Below, piece by piece: positions 2,822-9,139 of a stretch of 9,139 nucleotides of DNA. A model generated the notes under the pieces. It was not told where the DNA came from and ran no database searches. It was given only the letters and a program-made list of their open reading frames with translations. Made by a program: the position numbers and the translations under genes. Every line of letters begins with the position of its first letter. The stretch's first letter is position 1. Source of the DNA: Selaginella moellendorffii (taxonomy: Eukaryota > Plantae > Lycopodiophyta); NCBI RefSeq assembly GCF_000143415.4, contig NW_003314495.1:39519-48657 (forward strand), written 5' to 3'.

Positions 2822-3372
2822 TCTTGTGTAAGTGCGCTTACACACACCGACACAAAGCCTTCGCGTACGAACCAGCTTCAAACGCTTCAACCGTCGAGAT
2901 CACCGGATCAAACCAGGACCACGCGGCTGGCCGCTGGAGAGATCATATAATAATACCCGGGTGGCTCGAATCGCGAGAGAGCGAGCGGAGACTCAGCAGT
3001 AGCAGTCGGATTGAAAAGTAGAGAAATCCATTAAAAAGGAAAGAGCGAGAGAGGGGAAGAGCCAATGTAGTAAACCTCGCAGCGGATGTGTGTCGTGCTG
3101 GTGTGGCCACGCTCCATCTTCAGTGAGGGCTGACATAGTTCGCGAATCGATCTGGTCAAAAACGAGAACGATTCACCCGGTCAGATGGCACGAACAGGAA
3201 AATTCTTTCTTTTCTAGCAAGCAACACCTACCAGTCTACTGGTTGACAAGCCTTCGTCAAGAACGCAAGAAGCGACACTTAAGGTGGGCTAACATAGCTG
3301 ACAATGCGTCCTGCTTTTGTTTACACCTCCAAGTTAGCCCCAGAAATCCAGCCAAACCAGATCTTACGCTCG

Positions 3373-4440
3373 TCAGTATGGCTGCCGGTGCTTCCTGTGG
3401 AAACGATGATACTGCTTCCGTTTCCTCTCGATCCCGCTTAGCTCCCGCTTCTCAATTTCCACCACCTTGATCGGGCTCAGCTTGAACGTCCCGTTTCTAA
3501 GCTTGGCTTGAGTGTTGTGGAACCAGTCCATATTCACGTTGTCCAGAGGAACTTTCGATGGATCGCCACCTGGACCCGCCTTGACTCTCCTGTACGCCTC
3601 CAGTAGAACGTCTATGTCCGACACCACCTCCATCAAGCTCCGGTACCTCCCATCCGGATCCGGTGCTAGCATGGACAGCTTCTGATGAACTTTCTTGCAG
3701 TGCTCGTCCTGGACTAACGATCTAGAGTCGTACTCCTTCTTCATCGCTCTGAGATAAGCGCCGGCTTCCTTACGAACCCGCCCAGCTTCCCCCTGCTGCT
3801 GCCTAAACTTCTCCTCGGCCTTCTTCACTGCGTCCTCCGGAACATTGGGAAGAACACGCGCGAGTTCTTCCATCAATCTATCCGAGACCGAAGGCTGCTC
3901 CACCTCTTTACTTTCTTCCGTATCCTTCTCGCTCAGTTCACTGCTAGGTGTTTCATCCATCCCCTCGTTCTCGCCCCAGAGATCGTTGTCGTTGAGAAAC
4001 GTATCACCCTCCTCAAACTCCGACCCCTGGTCTGAGTCGCCACCACCACCACCCTCTCCTTCGTCGTGGCTCCACATCGACTCACTCTCACTATAGCTCC
4101 CTTCTCCATCGCTCATATCGGACAATTGCTCGCGCTCGTCGAAGAAGGACTTCTCATTCTTGTCACTAGAGCTAGACTCGGTGGAGCAGGACCTCCGAGC
4201 ACCTGGAATGAGTAAGAACGGCTCTCAAACAACCGACTGGCAGGCAAGCATTCAAGCGGCGGAACGAGCGGAGAGAGCCTGACCTTCGAAACGTAGAAAT
4301 CCGCCGCTCGAGAGCCCGGAAACCAGCCGCGATGACGCCAGAGTGCTGTGAAACGGCCGCATTGACTCCAGCGCCGCGATTTCACGAGGAATCCTATGTG
4401 TGTCGAAGTACGTGAGCAGGCAACGGCGCCGGGAGATCAT
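3373..4440 (-). CDS. Nuclear-encoded, putatively organelle-targeted protein carrying only the N-terminal RT0/RT1 part of a group II intron maturase/RT; exons 4440-4284 and 4202-3373; 328 aa
   Basis: A phase-1 intron GAAG|gtcagg(4283)...cattccag(4203)|GT joins the 62-aa ORF (4252..4440) to the frame of the 250-aa ORF (3373..4125) with no stop. The segment 3660-3448, DPDGRYRSLMEVVSDIDVLLEAYRRVKAGPGGDPSKVPLDNVNMDWFHNTQAKLRNGTFKLSPIKVVEIEK, follows the group II intron RT0/RT1 pattern (L..AY..IK..PG...LDG....WF......L..G.F.F.P...V.I.K). I found no RT2-7/YADD or domain X in any frame downstream. Confidence 0.75.
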
Positions 4441-4647
4441 ACCTGAGGCATCGCGGCCGCTGGAAGGCCGATTGCCGCGGCGGCGCGCGCATTGTCGCGA
4501 TCAGGCGCCTCGCTATTCCCCTGCTCGCCATGAGAAGCCCCAAGCCCTAAACCCTTGTGAGCTAATGACATGGCAAATCAGCCCTAAAATATGATGACGT
4601 GTCTGCCAAGCGGGCGGATAATGTTTTAGGGTTTTAGGCGCGAGGGA
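4441..4647. promoter_or_regulatory. 207-nt divergent (bidirectional) promoter with telo-box-like motifs and an ACGT element
   Basis: Lies between ATG 4440 (-) and ATG 4648 (+). TTAGGGTTT at 4626-4634 (AAACCCTAA on -), AAGCCCTAA/AAACCCTT at 4542-4556, TGACGTGT at 4595-4602. Confidence 0.6.
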
Positions 4648-5048
4648 ATGGCTACAATATCCGGGAATGCGGCATCCATGGCGCTCGCGCGCCGCCTTGT
4701 CTCTCCTCCCCAGGCGCTGCGTTCCTCCTCGTCGCTCTCCAAGTCAAATCTGGCTGCGAAATCATCGCCTTGCGTGATTCTCCGGGCAAATGCCGCTGCC
4801 GCCAATGCCGAAGGCTCCAAATTGCGGCAGATTTCTTCGCTAGATTCCATGATTTGGAGAGCTAGGAATGGCAATGGCGCCGTGCTGCGAATGAGCACTC
4901 CCACAGTTTTATCGCTCCAAGGTATGCTGAGAAAATTCTCCATCTTACTTGTTCTTTCTTTCTCTCTCCTTTTCCTTCTTTCTTTTATTTTCTTGGCTTG
5001 TTTGCAGGCACTTTTATGTGCACGAGCACAACAGATGATGGTGGATAA
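4648..5048 (+). CDS. Small organelle-targeted (transit-peptide-like) protein, exons 4648-4921 and 5008-5048, 104 aa; weak resemblance to NFD6-like small proteins; alternative 3' exons possible
   Basis: Ser/Ala/Arg-rich, acid-poor N-terminus (MATISGNAASMALARRLVSPPQALRSSSSLSK). Strong donor CAAG|gtatgc at 4922, pyrimidine-rich intron, acceptor tttgcag|G at 5007. The spliced end reads SLQGTFMCTSTTDDGG*. The family assignment is a tentative recollection only. Confidence 0.5.
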
Positions 5049-5414: not shown

Positions 5415-6623
5415 CTAGTTCCTCAGTCGGCAGTTTTTGCGAATCTCGCCTTCAGCCTTGACGTTAATAGCACCCATCCGGACCATGGCGTTTGCGAACT
5501 TGAACTGCCACATGTTTTCATCCTCGGCGTTTGACTCGGAAGAAAACTGGGTGAGCATGTCGCTGTGGAGCGTCTGATCTGAGATCATGAGCCCCATGTT
5601 GTTGACGAGGTTGGAGTAGTAGCGATTGTCAAACTGGGAAGGGGTGACAGGATCCAGCGGCACGACAGTTCTCGGATCAAAGTTCCTCGGACAGGCCTGC
5701 TTTAGTTTCCCGGCGTAAGCAGCGTCGAGATTCGGATCAGTATCAAACTCCGGGCTGAAGTNNNNNNNNNNNNNNNNNNNNNNNNNNNNNNNNNNNNNNN
5801 NNNNNNNNNNNNNNNNNNNNNNNNNNNNNNNNNNNNNNNNNNNNNNNNNNNNNNNNNNNNNNNNNNNNNNNNNNNNNNNNNNNNNNNNNNNNNNNNNNNN
5901 NNNNNNNNNNNNNNNNNNNNNNNNNNNNNNNNNNNNNNNNNNNNNNNNNNNNNNNNNNNNNNNNNNNNNNNNNNNNNNNNNNNNNNNNNNNNNNNNNNNN
6001 NNNNNNNNNNNNNNNNNNNNNNNNNNNNNNNNNNNNNNNNNNNNNNNNNNNNNNNNNNNNNNNNNNNNNNNNNNNNNNNNNNNNNNNNNNNNNNNNNNNN
6101 NNNNNNNNNNNNNNNNNNNNNNNNNNNNNNNNNNNNNNNNNNNNNNNNNNNNNNNNNNNNNNNNNNNNNNNNNNNNNNNNNNNNNNNNNNNNNNNNNNNN
6201 NNNNNNNNNNNNNNNNNNNNNNNNNNNNNNNNNNNNNNNNNNNNNNNNNNNNNNNNNNNNNNNNNNNNNNNNNNNNNNNNGTCACAGCCCTGTTCATCAA
6301 GTTGGCGAGGATTGGTGAGCAAGAATTCTTTCAATGACTACGGATTTTTCAAATCGATAACGATGCTGCCTAGATGAAAGGCGAGACAGAAGTTGATCAC
6401 GGACCTGGACGAAACAGTCGTGGAAGTGGAGACGAAGCAACGAAGCAGCGATGGATTGGTCTCGTGCCACGGCCGCGGTGAGAACTTTCTTGACAATCTC
6501 CTCGGCCATGGGACATCCATTTTGCTCGTAGTATCCAACAACGAGCTGAGCTTCCACACGGACAAGCGTGACAACAACACTCACCACCAATGCTGCTACT
6601 GCTTTGCGGACGACGAGCTCCAT
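5415..6623 (-). CDS. Class III secretory plant peroxidase; exon 1 6623-6405, exon 2 starts 6289, middle lost in the assembly gap, last exon visible 5761-5415
   Basis: Signal peptide MELVVRKAVAALVVSVVVTLVRVEA, then QLVVGYYEQNGCP and the distal-heme motif AASLLRLHFHDCFVQ|GCD split by the conserved phase-0 intron (6404-6290). The C-terminus has DPNLDAAYAGKLKQACP, LDPVTPSQFDNRYYSNL, GLMISDQTL and FANAMVRMG...GEIRKNCR. Confidence 0.95.
5762..6280. other. Assembly gap (519 N) inside the peroxidase gene
   Basis: Run of N bases. Confidence 1.
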
Positions 6624-6674
6624 CGCTCTTCCTCGCTCGGTGCTGTGACGACTCCCACTCCATCCATCACCACC

Positions 6675-6681
6675 ATTTATA
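6675..6681 (-). promoter_or_regulatory. TATA box of the peroxidase gene
   Basis: TATAAAT on the minus strand, about 50 nt upstream of ATG 6623. Confidence 0.6.
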
Positions 6682-6991
6682 CAGGTAACTTTGCTCCAAC
6701 TTGTTGAGTTGTGCTTGAGCTGTTTAGCAGAAATATCCTTTTCCAAATGATTTTGCGCGGCTTCTAGTGGAAGAGCAACTCCAGTAAAAAGTAAGCCCAC
6801 TTCCATTATTCTAGATTCTTGTCAGAATACATCGCTTGGCTCTAAAGCTACGAGAAAATCTTATGTACAGGTGACTGATCACTAGCAAAAAAAAAGAAGA
6901 AAAACGCTTCAATACGGCCGGTATGGATACTCTGCAAAGATTGAGTTAGCCCCTCTCACGCAAAGATTTTAAACAGGAACTTAGGTGCTAG

Positions 6992-8353
6992 CTACAAACC
7001 TTGATATACTGGAGGATAGCCAGACGAAGTTGGAGGAGGCCCATACGAAGCTGGAGCTGTAGGAACATAAGGAGGTGGCTGCTGATGCGTATACGGAGAT
7101 GGTGGTGGAGGATGAGAATAAGCTGCTGAATAGCCGGCCTGGGGAGCTGGAGATGGATATGTTTGTGGCGAATAAGGTCCAGGTCCATAGCTGGAATACG
7201 CTCCACTATGTGGTTGCTGATGCTGTTGCTGTGGTGGTGGATTGTAGTATGATTGCGACGAATATGGAGCCGCAGGAGCTGGATATGGGGCCGCTGTTGG
7301 TGGTGGAGCAGCGTACGGATAAGGCTGTGGAGCCGTGGAGTATAGCTGCGCTGCATATGGAGACGAGACCATCGGAGCTACTGGTTTTGGCTGGAAAGAA
7401 GATCCCAAGTAAGAAAAACAGTGTTGAAAGTATCAAGTCTAAAGCTTACCGTTTTCGTAAAGTGTAGAATGACCCGCAGTTCTCCGGCATATCTGCGAAA
7501 AGAAAGATCAAATGTAAGCTTTAGACTCTCCTGTTTCTTCTCGATTTTTGATACCTTCCACTCTTTGATGTCAGGTTCCACGTTGAATCATCATAGCCCG
7601 TGGTGAGAGCTTTGTCCAGCAGTATCCTAGAAAAAAATTTACGAGGGCCGCGTCAGGCATGACGTCCACGAGGAAACGCAAGCTACAAAAATCGCACAAC
7701 GCACCTTCCAGAGCCAATGAAGTCATCGAATGTAAGCGTGTTGCTGTTCCACACCTCCGCGTTTATCTCACGGAGCCCCTCGATGAGAGGCAGCACAAAC
7801 TTCTGGTTGAAGGACGGATTTCTTCCTCCATCTGCGGAAAAGAAAGTCTCTTAGCTCGTGATCAAGTAAAAAGCTAGCTACAGTGATCATGAGCTTATGA
7901 TCAAGAAAATGGAAGAAAACATTTTTCTAGCAAACAAGTGATCAAGCACAGCAAACCCAAAAAGAAAAAAAAAAGTGATCATGAGCGTATGATCGAAATG
8001 ACCGAAAAACTCAAGGAGCACAACAAACAAACAGGCAAACGAGAAATTTTCTTAGCTCGTGATCAAGCAAGCAGCTCCTTACCTGTGTCGGTCTTTGTCC
8101 TCAATTTGCTACTGGCATAAGTGATCACAACGTATGGATCCTGCCTCGACAGCCATTCCTTGTCTCTCAAATTCCTGCATCCTAGAACTGCCAAGACACA
8201 CAAAGAAGATTCTTAGCCGAATCACTCCAGGAAATTCGCTCCCACCAAAGAGAAATAGAAAATGGGAGCGACAGTGCCACCGACAGGGCGCCAAGATCTG
8301 GAATTCCACTCACCATTGATATCGAGGAGCTGCCCTTGCACGCCCGCCGCCAT
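6992..8353 (-). CDS. C2 (CaLB) domain protein with a Pro/Tyr/Gln-rich low-complexity C-terminus (ERG/AT4G34150-like); exons 8353-8314, 8187-8083, 7831-7705, 7626-7555, 7492-7450, 7390-6992; 261 aa
   Basis: All five introns are GT-AG and phase-consistent. The spliced product is MAAGVQGQLLDINVLGCRNLRDKEWLSRQDPYVVITYASSKLRTKTDTDGGRNPSFNQKFVLPLIEGLREINAEVWNSNTLTFDDFIGSGRILLDKALTTGYDDSTWNLTSKSGRYAGELRVILHFTKT followed by a PY-rich tail. It has the typical C2 motifs DPYV, NP.FN and DDFIG. Confidence 0.93.
7841..8070. repeat. Degenerate tandem repeat within C2-gene intron 2
   Basis: CTTAGCTCGTGATCAAG at 7850 and 8051; GTGATCATGAGC(T/G)TATGATC at 7883 and 7976; a partial unit near 7938. Confidence 0.7.
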
Positions 8354-8476
8354 TCCCTCTCGCGCTTCCTCGATCGATCGATCGATTGAATCACAGCCGC
8401 CCTAGTTTTTTCCCATTATATGTGAATGCCGCCGGACTGCGTCAATGCCGGCGAATATTCCATTCCATTCTATGTT

Positions 8477-9139
8477 TCACAGCTCCACGCGGAGGATATT
8501 GTTTTGGTTCATGCTTTTCATCGATACTTCTCGCCTATGATCTATTTGCCATTCGCCATCTACGACGAACTTCATCTGGGCCAAAGAAGAAAGAAAACGT
8601 TTTCTTTTTATCAGCCATCATCGATCGAAGAGAACTTTTGAAACTCGTTACCTCGTACACGCCAGGATAGAGCCATAGCTCGGTCTCCCACAACAACGGA
8701 CCTCTAGAAAAAAAACCTTGGAGTTTAGCAAAAGAGAAACAAGCCGACAGTGATAAATTCACCTTGATCCGTCTGGTTTGACGATCTCGGACGAAAGATC
8801 GGGCTCCAGCACGAAAAAGTGCTGCCAGCCATTGAAGCTTCCAGCGAGCTCGACTTTGGAAGCTACACCCCACCACTCTATCTTCACCTGCGTTGACAAT
8901 CTTAAACGTGTCATGTCTGGAGAGAATTTTCGAAGTTTGTAGTACCTGTTTTAGATTCGCCAGCGCATGCTCCGCAGCGCTGAGTCGCAAGTCCTTTTCC
9001 ATGGACGCTTGCTTAGCCTGGGACAGTTCTGCCGTGGTCTTGGCTTGTACCAAAGCGAGTTGTGCCTGGAATTAAGAGAAAACTCTTTCTTTAGAACTGA
9101 AAAATAATAAGCGTTGATTCTTTCACCTTGGCCTCGTTC
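8477..9139 (-). CDS. PTST1: PROTEIN TARGETING TO STARCH 1-like (coiled coil + CBM48), 3' part; exons ...9139-9127, 9065-8946, 8887-8763, 8703-8652, 8575-8477; 5' end outside the window
   Basis: The spliced product is AQLALVQAKTTAELSQAKQASMEKDLRLSAAEHALANLKQ (coiled coil) followed by VKIEWWGVASKVELAGSFNGWQH...[26 protein letters not shown]...QNNILRVEL*. This is a CBM48 with GSFNGW and KF.VDG.W; the LWLYPG.YE motif is characteristic of PTST1. Splice phases are all consistent. Confidence 0.88.

Follow-up and report, generated by a model that had tools for sequence, protein, structure and literature searches.

Plant nuclear maturases (nMAT1-4) are proteins of around 700 aa in which degenerate RT1-7 motifs are followed by domain X, with nMAT3 and nMAT4 also carrying D/En. 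Plant organelles depend on degenerate derivatives of group II intron maturases (MatK, MatR and nMAT1-4). To our knowledge, those known so far all keep the thumb (X), and their RT0 has been lost or degraded. RT0 provides bacterial maturases with high-affinity, sequence-specific intron binding, and that of LtrA binds domain IVa of the intron. MatR and MatK are devoid of the N-terminal RT0 part and keep the later RT motifs together with domain X, and the RT0 of the nMATs has been described as degenerate (PMC9321910, PMC13172542). Paralogues of the nMAT1/2 type are present in Selaginella (PMC10012718).

The gene described here lies in a stretch of 9,139 nucleotides of Selaginella moellendorffii (contig NW_003314495.1, positions 39,519 to 48,657), called the window from here on and used for all coordinates. 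It is nuclear, as are the genes for nMAT1-4, which also come from mitochondrial group II maturases and whose products have presequences and are imported into mitochondria. However, the nMATs keep RT1-7 and X, whereas the Selaginella protein keeps RT0 only. MatR and MatK are likewise partial derivatives of group II RT/maturases, but with the converse truncation. We put at roughly 85% the joint probability that the gene is correctly identified and that its conserved domain descends from the NTE/RT0 of a mitochondrial-type group II intron RT/maturase. RT0 alone is here found as a conserved and expressed nuclear gene family in lycophytes, ferns and angiosperms, the converse of the known plant maturase derivatives.

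Structure and transcription of the gene

In S. moellendorffii, this locus corresponds to a nuclear gene that is expressed, with three coding exons and a product of 342 aa. An ORF of 250 aa on the minus strand (3373-4125) showed 98% identity to the S. moellendorffii "uncharacterized protein LOC9642249" of NCBI, also of 342 aa, which can be placed on the window in three exons. Transcript contigs from four runs, belonging to four studies, were mapped on 3000-4800; the type of these runs was only guessed, and they were taken as RNA because of their GT..AG joints and the small size of their assemblies (25-37 Mb). From the contig joints and the LOC9642249 alignment, the CDS corresponds to 4531-4443, 4393-4284 and 4202-3373 on the minus strand.

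The first exon (4443-4531) contains the CDS start and encodes MASRGIARRLIATMRAPPRQSAFQRPRCLR, with an alignment of 100% to the LOC9642249 protein. In contigs of two studies, 4443 is connected with 4393 over a GT..AG intron of 49 nt (4394-4442), which is followed by the second exon (4284-4393), which is supported by contigs and joints and whose translation equals that of the LOC9642249 protein. The original prediction was a two-exon ORF of 328 aa (4440-4284 plus 4202-3376). Such an ORF is present in the sequence, and its 4284/4202 junction was recovered in the transcript contigs as the GT..AG joint of an 81-nt intron (4203-4283), found in one run with loose ends in the other three, but the spliced product has three exons and 342 aa, and the ATG at 4440 taken as its start is intronic, as it falls in the donor GTATGA of the 49-nt intron. 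The actual start is assigned to the ATG at 4531 (M1) following the model that NCBI gives for the other haplotype; it is preceded by an in-frame stop, and the contigs reach 4498, in such a way that either M1 or M14 could be used. The peptide encoded by exon 1 is basic, with a net charge of +8 and zero D/E in the first 30 aa of the protein, so that by its composition the N-terminus looks like a mitochondrial presequence with a putative targeting role.

The coding part of the third exon (3373-4202, minus strand) is defined by the ORF and by contigs of 1016-1030 nt that span 3232-4204 in all four runs, and encodes the acidic middle of the protein together with the RT0-like domain and a basic tail, ending with the TGA stop at 3375-3373. 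The 3' end agreed with what had been anticipated: in the four runs the contigs read through the stop into a 3' UTR (first part, 3232-3372) and splice from there to a non-coding exon, with no continuation into RT or X sequences in the transcripts. The 3' UTR intron involved is of the GT..AG type and 80 nt long (3152-3231; joint 3151->3232, four of four runs), and its donor is located 141 nt after the stop. The last exon covers 3000-3151 on the minus strand, where contigs extend beyond the mapped stretch, and goes on to around 2400 as estimated from the sizes of the transcript contigs.

An additional isoform skips exon 3, with exon 2 joined to the last exon (3151->4284), in two of the four runs. 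This form was checked for another protein behind the shared presequence and none was found, its ORF being of only 76 aa. An intron in the 3' UTR at 141 nt from the stop corresponds to a classic NMD-prone layout, and together with the skipping of exon 3 may reflect a regulated unproductive splicing.

An RT0-like domain and the family that carries it

The RT0-like domain comprises residues 237-316 (3454-3693, minus strand), as delimited by tblastn, phmmer, hhalign, TIGR04416, LtrA and AF2 data. A phmmer search with residues 168-342 against 1.84e9 representative proteins detected full-length group II RT/maturases with E values of 4.7e-9, 2.9e-7 and 5.4e-7, well outside the range of chance. These proteins possess the YADD motif, domain X and an endonuclease of the HNH type, and part of them are so named by their sources. 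When eight group II RTs were compared with the window by tblastn, the sole match was 3654-3448 (E 3e-15 to 4e-10), practically the 3660-3448 stretch where RT0 homology had been proposed, and the phmmer and hhalign profile checks were also positive. In the latter, the profile of the short family was aligned to that of RT N-termini with a probability of 99.25% and an E value of 5.9e-20, its columns 19-108 corresponding to RT columns 27-112 and ending just before the RPLGI of RT1, and even an angiosperm-only profile matched RT0 in register (89.6%, E 1.9e-6). The Selaginella protein shares with LtrA (5G2X), the T. elongatus RT (6ME0) and TIGR04416 the NTE/RT0 motifs DGRY..., L..AY..IKS.PG, LDGI..F and L..GTYKF.P.R.V.

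Other comparisons gave weaker signals of the same kind. The NCBIfam model TIGR04416 was matched over its positions 2-62 with an E value of 0.046 and a score of 12.8 bits, the cut-off being 300, and this weak match was seen in two of 12 family members. LtrA was the top hit of a PDB search with the family profile, its residues 34-96 being in register, but with an E value of 0.38. An AF2 model of residues 225-342 showed pLDDT values of 81-95 across the RT0-like domain. Among 48,161 chains, the two best structural matches of the search were N-termini of group II-type RTs (9d5x_A, Z 4.7, and 6me0_C, Z 4.3, over 84 residues), with Z scores too low to stand alone, and an Atlas shape search of the model retrieved, apart from the plant family, an RVT_1 cluster with a weak TM of 0.49. 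Foldseek gave no match of the AF2 model in the PDB at E<=0.001, and no family was assigned by Pfam to the ORF or to ten members of the family, with sub-threshold noise to V-ATPase_G_2 and PGC7_Stella coming from the acidic/coiled part.

Two other identities gained no support from these searches: a PDB sequence search with the single protein gave only chance matches to alpha-actinin, and no plant mitoribosome chain was matched in the PDB search, as would have been expected for a mitoribosomal protein.

Beyond RT0 the likeness ends. As had been noticed from the sequence, the alignment stops before the RPLGI of RT1 and gives way to a basic tail and a stop; this tail, EKRELSGIERKRKQYHRFHRKHRQPY (3376-3453, minus strand; net charge +7), occupies the place of RT1 (RPLGI...) in true RTs, in such a way that the ORF ends around 26 residues after the RT0 match and lacks YADD. 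Bacterial and organellar RTs carry RT1-7 (YADD), X and En, in contrast to the Selaginella protein, which is devoid of the three. Pfam scans gave no match to RVT_1, GIIM or Intron_maturas2, so neither the RT1-7/YADD palm and fingers nor domain X was detected, and tblastn found no RT1-7, X or En in the window or within 10 kb on either side of the loci of Selaginella and Diphasiastrum. Of the features that define a plant nMAT, a degenerate RT and an intact X behind a presequence, only a presequence-like N-terminus was found, RT1-7 and X being absent. All the members seen end before RT1 and consequently lack polymerase, thumb (X) and endonuclease, so this is not a maturase in the usual sense.

Proteins with the same RT0-only build were detected by homology in Diphasiastrum, ferns and angiosperms, orthologs with this truncation being among the checks proposed with the original prediction. 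This prediction had presented the gene as a lycophyte oddity, and in this it has to be amended, as the gene belongs instead to a large, already annotated and mostly unnamed family. The homologue of Diphasiastrum complanatum has 273 aa (E 7e-23, 54% identity over 91 aa), and a second gene of Selaginella (LOC112343584 / LOC112342137) encodes 355 aa (E 1e-21) and finishes right after the RT0-like domain with the tail KKKSFKK. Angiosperm members from tomato, Striga, Quillaja, Rhodiola and others were found by phmmer with E values from 3e-6 to 1e-4 (2.9e-6 for tomato, 1.4e-5 for Striga and 2.1e-5 for Rhodiola, in the library of 1.84e9 proteins), and fern members (Adiantum, Ceratopteris), along with unnamed Logan transcripts grouping with ferns, between 2e-5 and 8e-4. 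Members were thus seen in lycophytes, ferns and angiosperms, the lack of bryophyte and gymnosperm ones being no evidence of absence. A profile search retrieved 353 proteins at E<=0.001, and the best 120 of these 353 were nearly all named angiosperm proteins or unnamed Logan/ENA/JGI transcripts of around 270-340 aa.

Most family members are annotated as "uncharacterized", and some are misnamed as GatC, methionyl-tRNA formyltransferase, nucleolin or clavata3-like. In Adiantum nelumboides, at least eight near-identical members (MCO5561735-MCO5561746, L7F22_015358 to _015369) are located on one 2.48-Mb contig, in what looks like a tandem amplification.

The family has a common build of 200-360 aa in total, with a basic N-terminus, an acidic middle, a domain of about 80 residues and a basic tail. 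In the eight members measured, the first 30 residues had a net charge of 0 to +8 (at least +3 in seven of them), the middle region of -6 to -30, and the domain 80-86 residues, and seven had a tail with a net charge of +5 to +12, the Ceratopteris protein being tailless. By alignment, members end within around 25 residues of the point where RT1 starts in true RTs. Among 18 angiosperms, the RT0-like segment was the most conserved part (0.92), followed by the tail (0.90).

A maximum-likelihood tree was built on 91 shared columns, with plant nMAT and matR sequences not included. A single branch (98/94) had all the short proteins on its same side, where they formed lycophyte (88/90), fern (95/96) and angiosperm (100/99) subgroups, a topology that fits a single old truncation followed by vertical descent. 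The two Selaginella genes grouped together (94/89), pointing to a duplication in the lineage of Selaginella. As an alternative to one family, related RTs may have been truncated independently; the similarity between lycophyte and angiosperm proteins is modest, around 29% identity over the domain, and the set of sequences in the tree, from which nMAT and matR are absent, would also leave room for this.

DFR1 and the possible functions of the family

The Arabidopsis member of the family appears to be AT5G17460, or DFR1, whose description is identical to that of the Arabidopsis family protein AED92429/AED92430 (PMC10995227); this assignment rests on a match in name and chromosome and not on an accession cross-reference. 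DFR1 has been described as a mitochondrial protein that binds and inhibits ProDH and P5CDH, the enzymes of proline degradation (Ren et al. 2018, Cell Rep 23:3960, as cited in PMC10837010 and PMC9252438). In these accounts, binding and inhibition of ProDH and P5CDH, and not splicing, is the sole activity reported in the family. DFR1 was not detected in ProDH1/P5CDH complexes, and the interaction assays have been criticised (PMC10837010). Drought, cold and ABA act as inducers of DFR1, and published lists of genes that respond to ABA, cold and salt include AT5G17460. In the literature searched, we found no paper tying DFR1 to maturases or stating an RT0 origin.

DFR1 and the Selaginella protein have the same architecture, and their domains align over the full length, with the same end point and on the same side of the tree branch, at the identity level given above for lycophytes and angiosperms. 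They differ in the RT0 loop, which is RT-like in the lycophyte protein (GPGGDPSKVPLDNV) and reads GPEYEELRKGGPK in angiosperms, and in the acidic region, where the LWTGSEDE/DADDSDEL repeats conserved in angiosperms are not obvious in Selaginella; binding to ProDH/P5CDH and induction by stress are known for Arabidopsis DFR1 only. For DFR1, a stress-tolerance protein of "otherwise unknown function" and with misleading database names, the homology offers an evolutionary origin and a structural hypothesis.

Further candidates for the identity of the gene, namely PCIS1 (AT5G25500, 420 aa) and the MatK partners MKIP1, EMB3120, ValRS2 and uL4c, were left aside on the basis of their loci, sizes and annotated families.

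These data support the reading of the gene as a domesticated RT0-only protein, whereas its presentation as an intron-binding mini-maturase would be a hypothesis in competition with the different function published for the Arabidopsis member, and the split-maturase and dominant-negative roles also raised in the original prediction would be hypotheses as well. We propose that the protein would be imported into mitochondria and act there by binding and not as an enzyme, its putative binding surface being the helical module derived from RT0 together with the basic tail. A role as a protein-binding regulator of the ProDH/P5CDH kind falls somewhat short of an even chance, and a retained capability to bind organellar RNA or introns is rather doubtful. 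A partner of RNA, intron or maturase nature stays in play because of the ancestry of the domain, the basic tail and the lack of RT0 in MatR and MatK.

The alternative that survives best, although unlikely, is that the protein would be a splicing cofactor or the trans-acting RT0 of a split maturase, binding organellar group II intron RNA and perhaps supplying the RT0 that MatR and MatK lack. The descent of the domain from RT0, a tail of +5 to +12 well suited for nucleic-acid binding, the absence of RT0 in MatR/MatK and its degeneration in nMATs (PMC9321910, PMC13172542), and a distribution that coincides with plants having many mitochondrial group II introns are all in line with it. However, the published work on DFR1, in the accounts cited above, reports another activity and a stress-induced expression rather than a splicing phenotype; the loop of RT0 (PGNMTPG..TLDG) has been replaced by a different sequence in angiosperms and has become acidic in ferns; and DFR1 is not among the partners co-immunoprecipitated with MatK (MKIP1, EMB3120, ValRS2, uL4c).

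In its most specific form, which we regard as distinctly improbable, the DFR1 family would provide in trans the RT0 that plant organellar maturases are missing, and would dock either on the maturase or on domain IV of the intron. MatR, and in functional terms MatK or the nMATs, would have been deprived of a working RT0 by an old event of gene fission and transfer, and the imported RT0 with its basic tail would restore high-affinity binding. If true, the splicing of certain introns could become stress-responsive, given the induction of DFR1. For the non-enzymatic binding protein that we propose, the question is now a testable one, namely if a former RNA-binding module of a retroelement regulates proline catabolism, still contacts organellar introns or maturases, or does both.

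Haplotypes and neighbouring genes

LOC9642249 is located on a scaffold of 6.95 Mb with matching neighbours, a peroxidase upstream and a gene for 563 aa downstream, which in the window shows a WRKYGQK motif. The RT0 gene has equal length in this scaffold and in the window, with 12 differences in 1159 bases, and the two sequences probably represent both haplotypes of the assembly.

This comparison also bears on the idea of a lineage-specific fragment in decay, nMAT-like or derived from a NUMT, which would be transcribed by chance and serve no conserved function. The two haplotypes differ by six non-synonymous and five synonymous changes, as could be expected from such a fragment, although these are too few for inferring selection within the species, five of the six amino-acid differences fall outside the RT0-like domain, and frame and stop are identical in both. 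Only around 70 residues are RT-like and no Pfam family is recognised, but in the angiosperm protein no other part is as well conserved as the domain, and the truncated build is kept in Diphasiastrum, the Selaginella paralogue, ferns and angiosperms, with a grouping on the tree whose subgroups are those of lycophytes, ferns and angiosperms. Even if exon-3 skipping and the 3' UTR intron suggest unproductive or NMD-prone transcripts, we consider this explanation highly improbable, and the opinion given in the original prediction that this is not a raw NUMT is sustained by a gene that is spliced, transcribed, with the same frame and stop in two haplotypes, and conserved in build across lineages.

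An assembly or annotation artefact, with a full-length nMAT whose RT1-7/X exons would lie farther downstream or in a gap, is scarcely credible in spite of the N run of the window (~5750-6290) and the nuclear maturase paralogues of Selaginella (PMC10012718), since contigs read through the stop at 3375-3373 and are spliced to nothing but a non-coding exon. In addition, the N run is placed inside the peroxidase gene, which is upstream, the independent haplotype scaffold has an identical structure, the 10-kb flanks in Selaginella and Diphasiastrum are without RT-like sequence, and the homologues of other plants share this end point.

The neighbouring genes of the window were also recorded. A convergent gene on the plus strand (250-2134) encodes a WRKY-type protein, with WRKYGQK in the ORF 1449-1625 and long poly-Gln tracts. 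The last exon of the RT0 gene, which is non-coding, may reach towards the 3' end of this WRKY gene, to ~2400. On the minus strand, the class III peroxidase gene (5415-6806) is broken by the assembly N run, with PF00141 on the sister scaffold (7860-9116); at higher coordinates there are a Pro/Gln/Tyr-rich low-complexity ORF of 138 aa (6992-7408, minus strand) and a C2-domain-like exon, CRNLRDKEWLSRQDPYVVITY (8063-8203, minus strand), where the annotation of the sister scaffold shows a C2 protein (PF00168).
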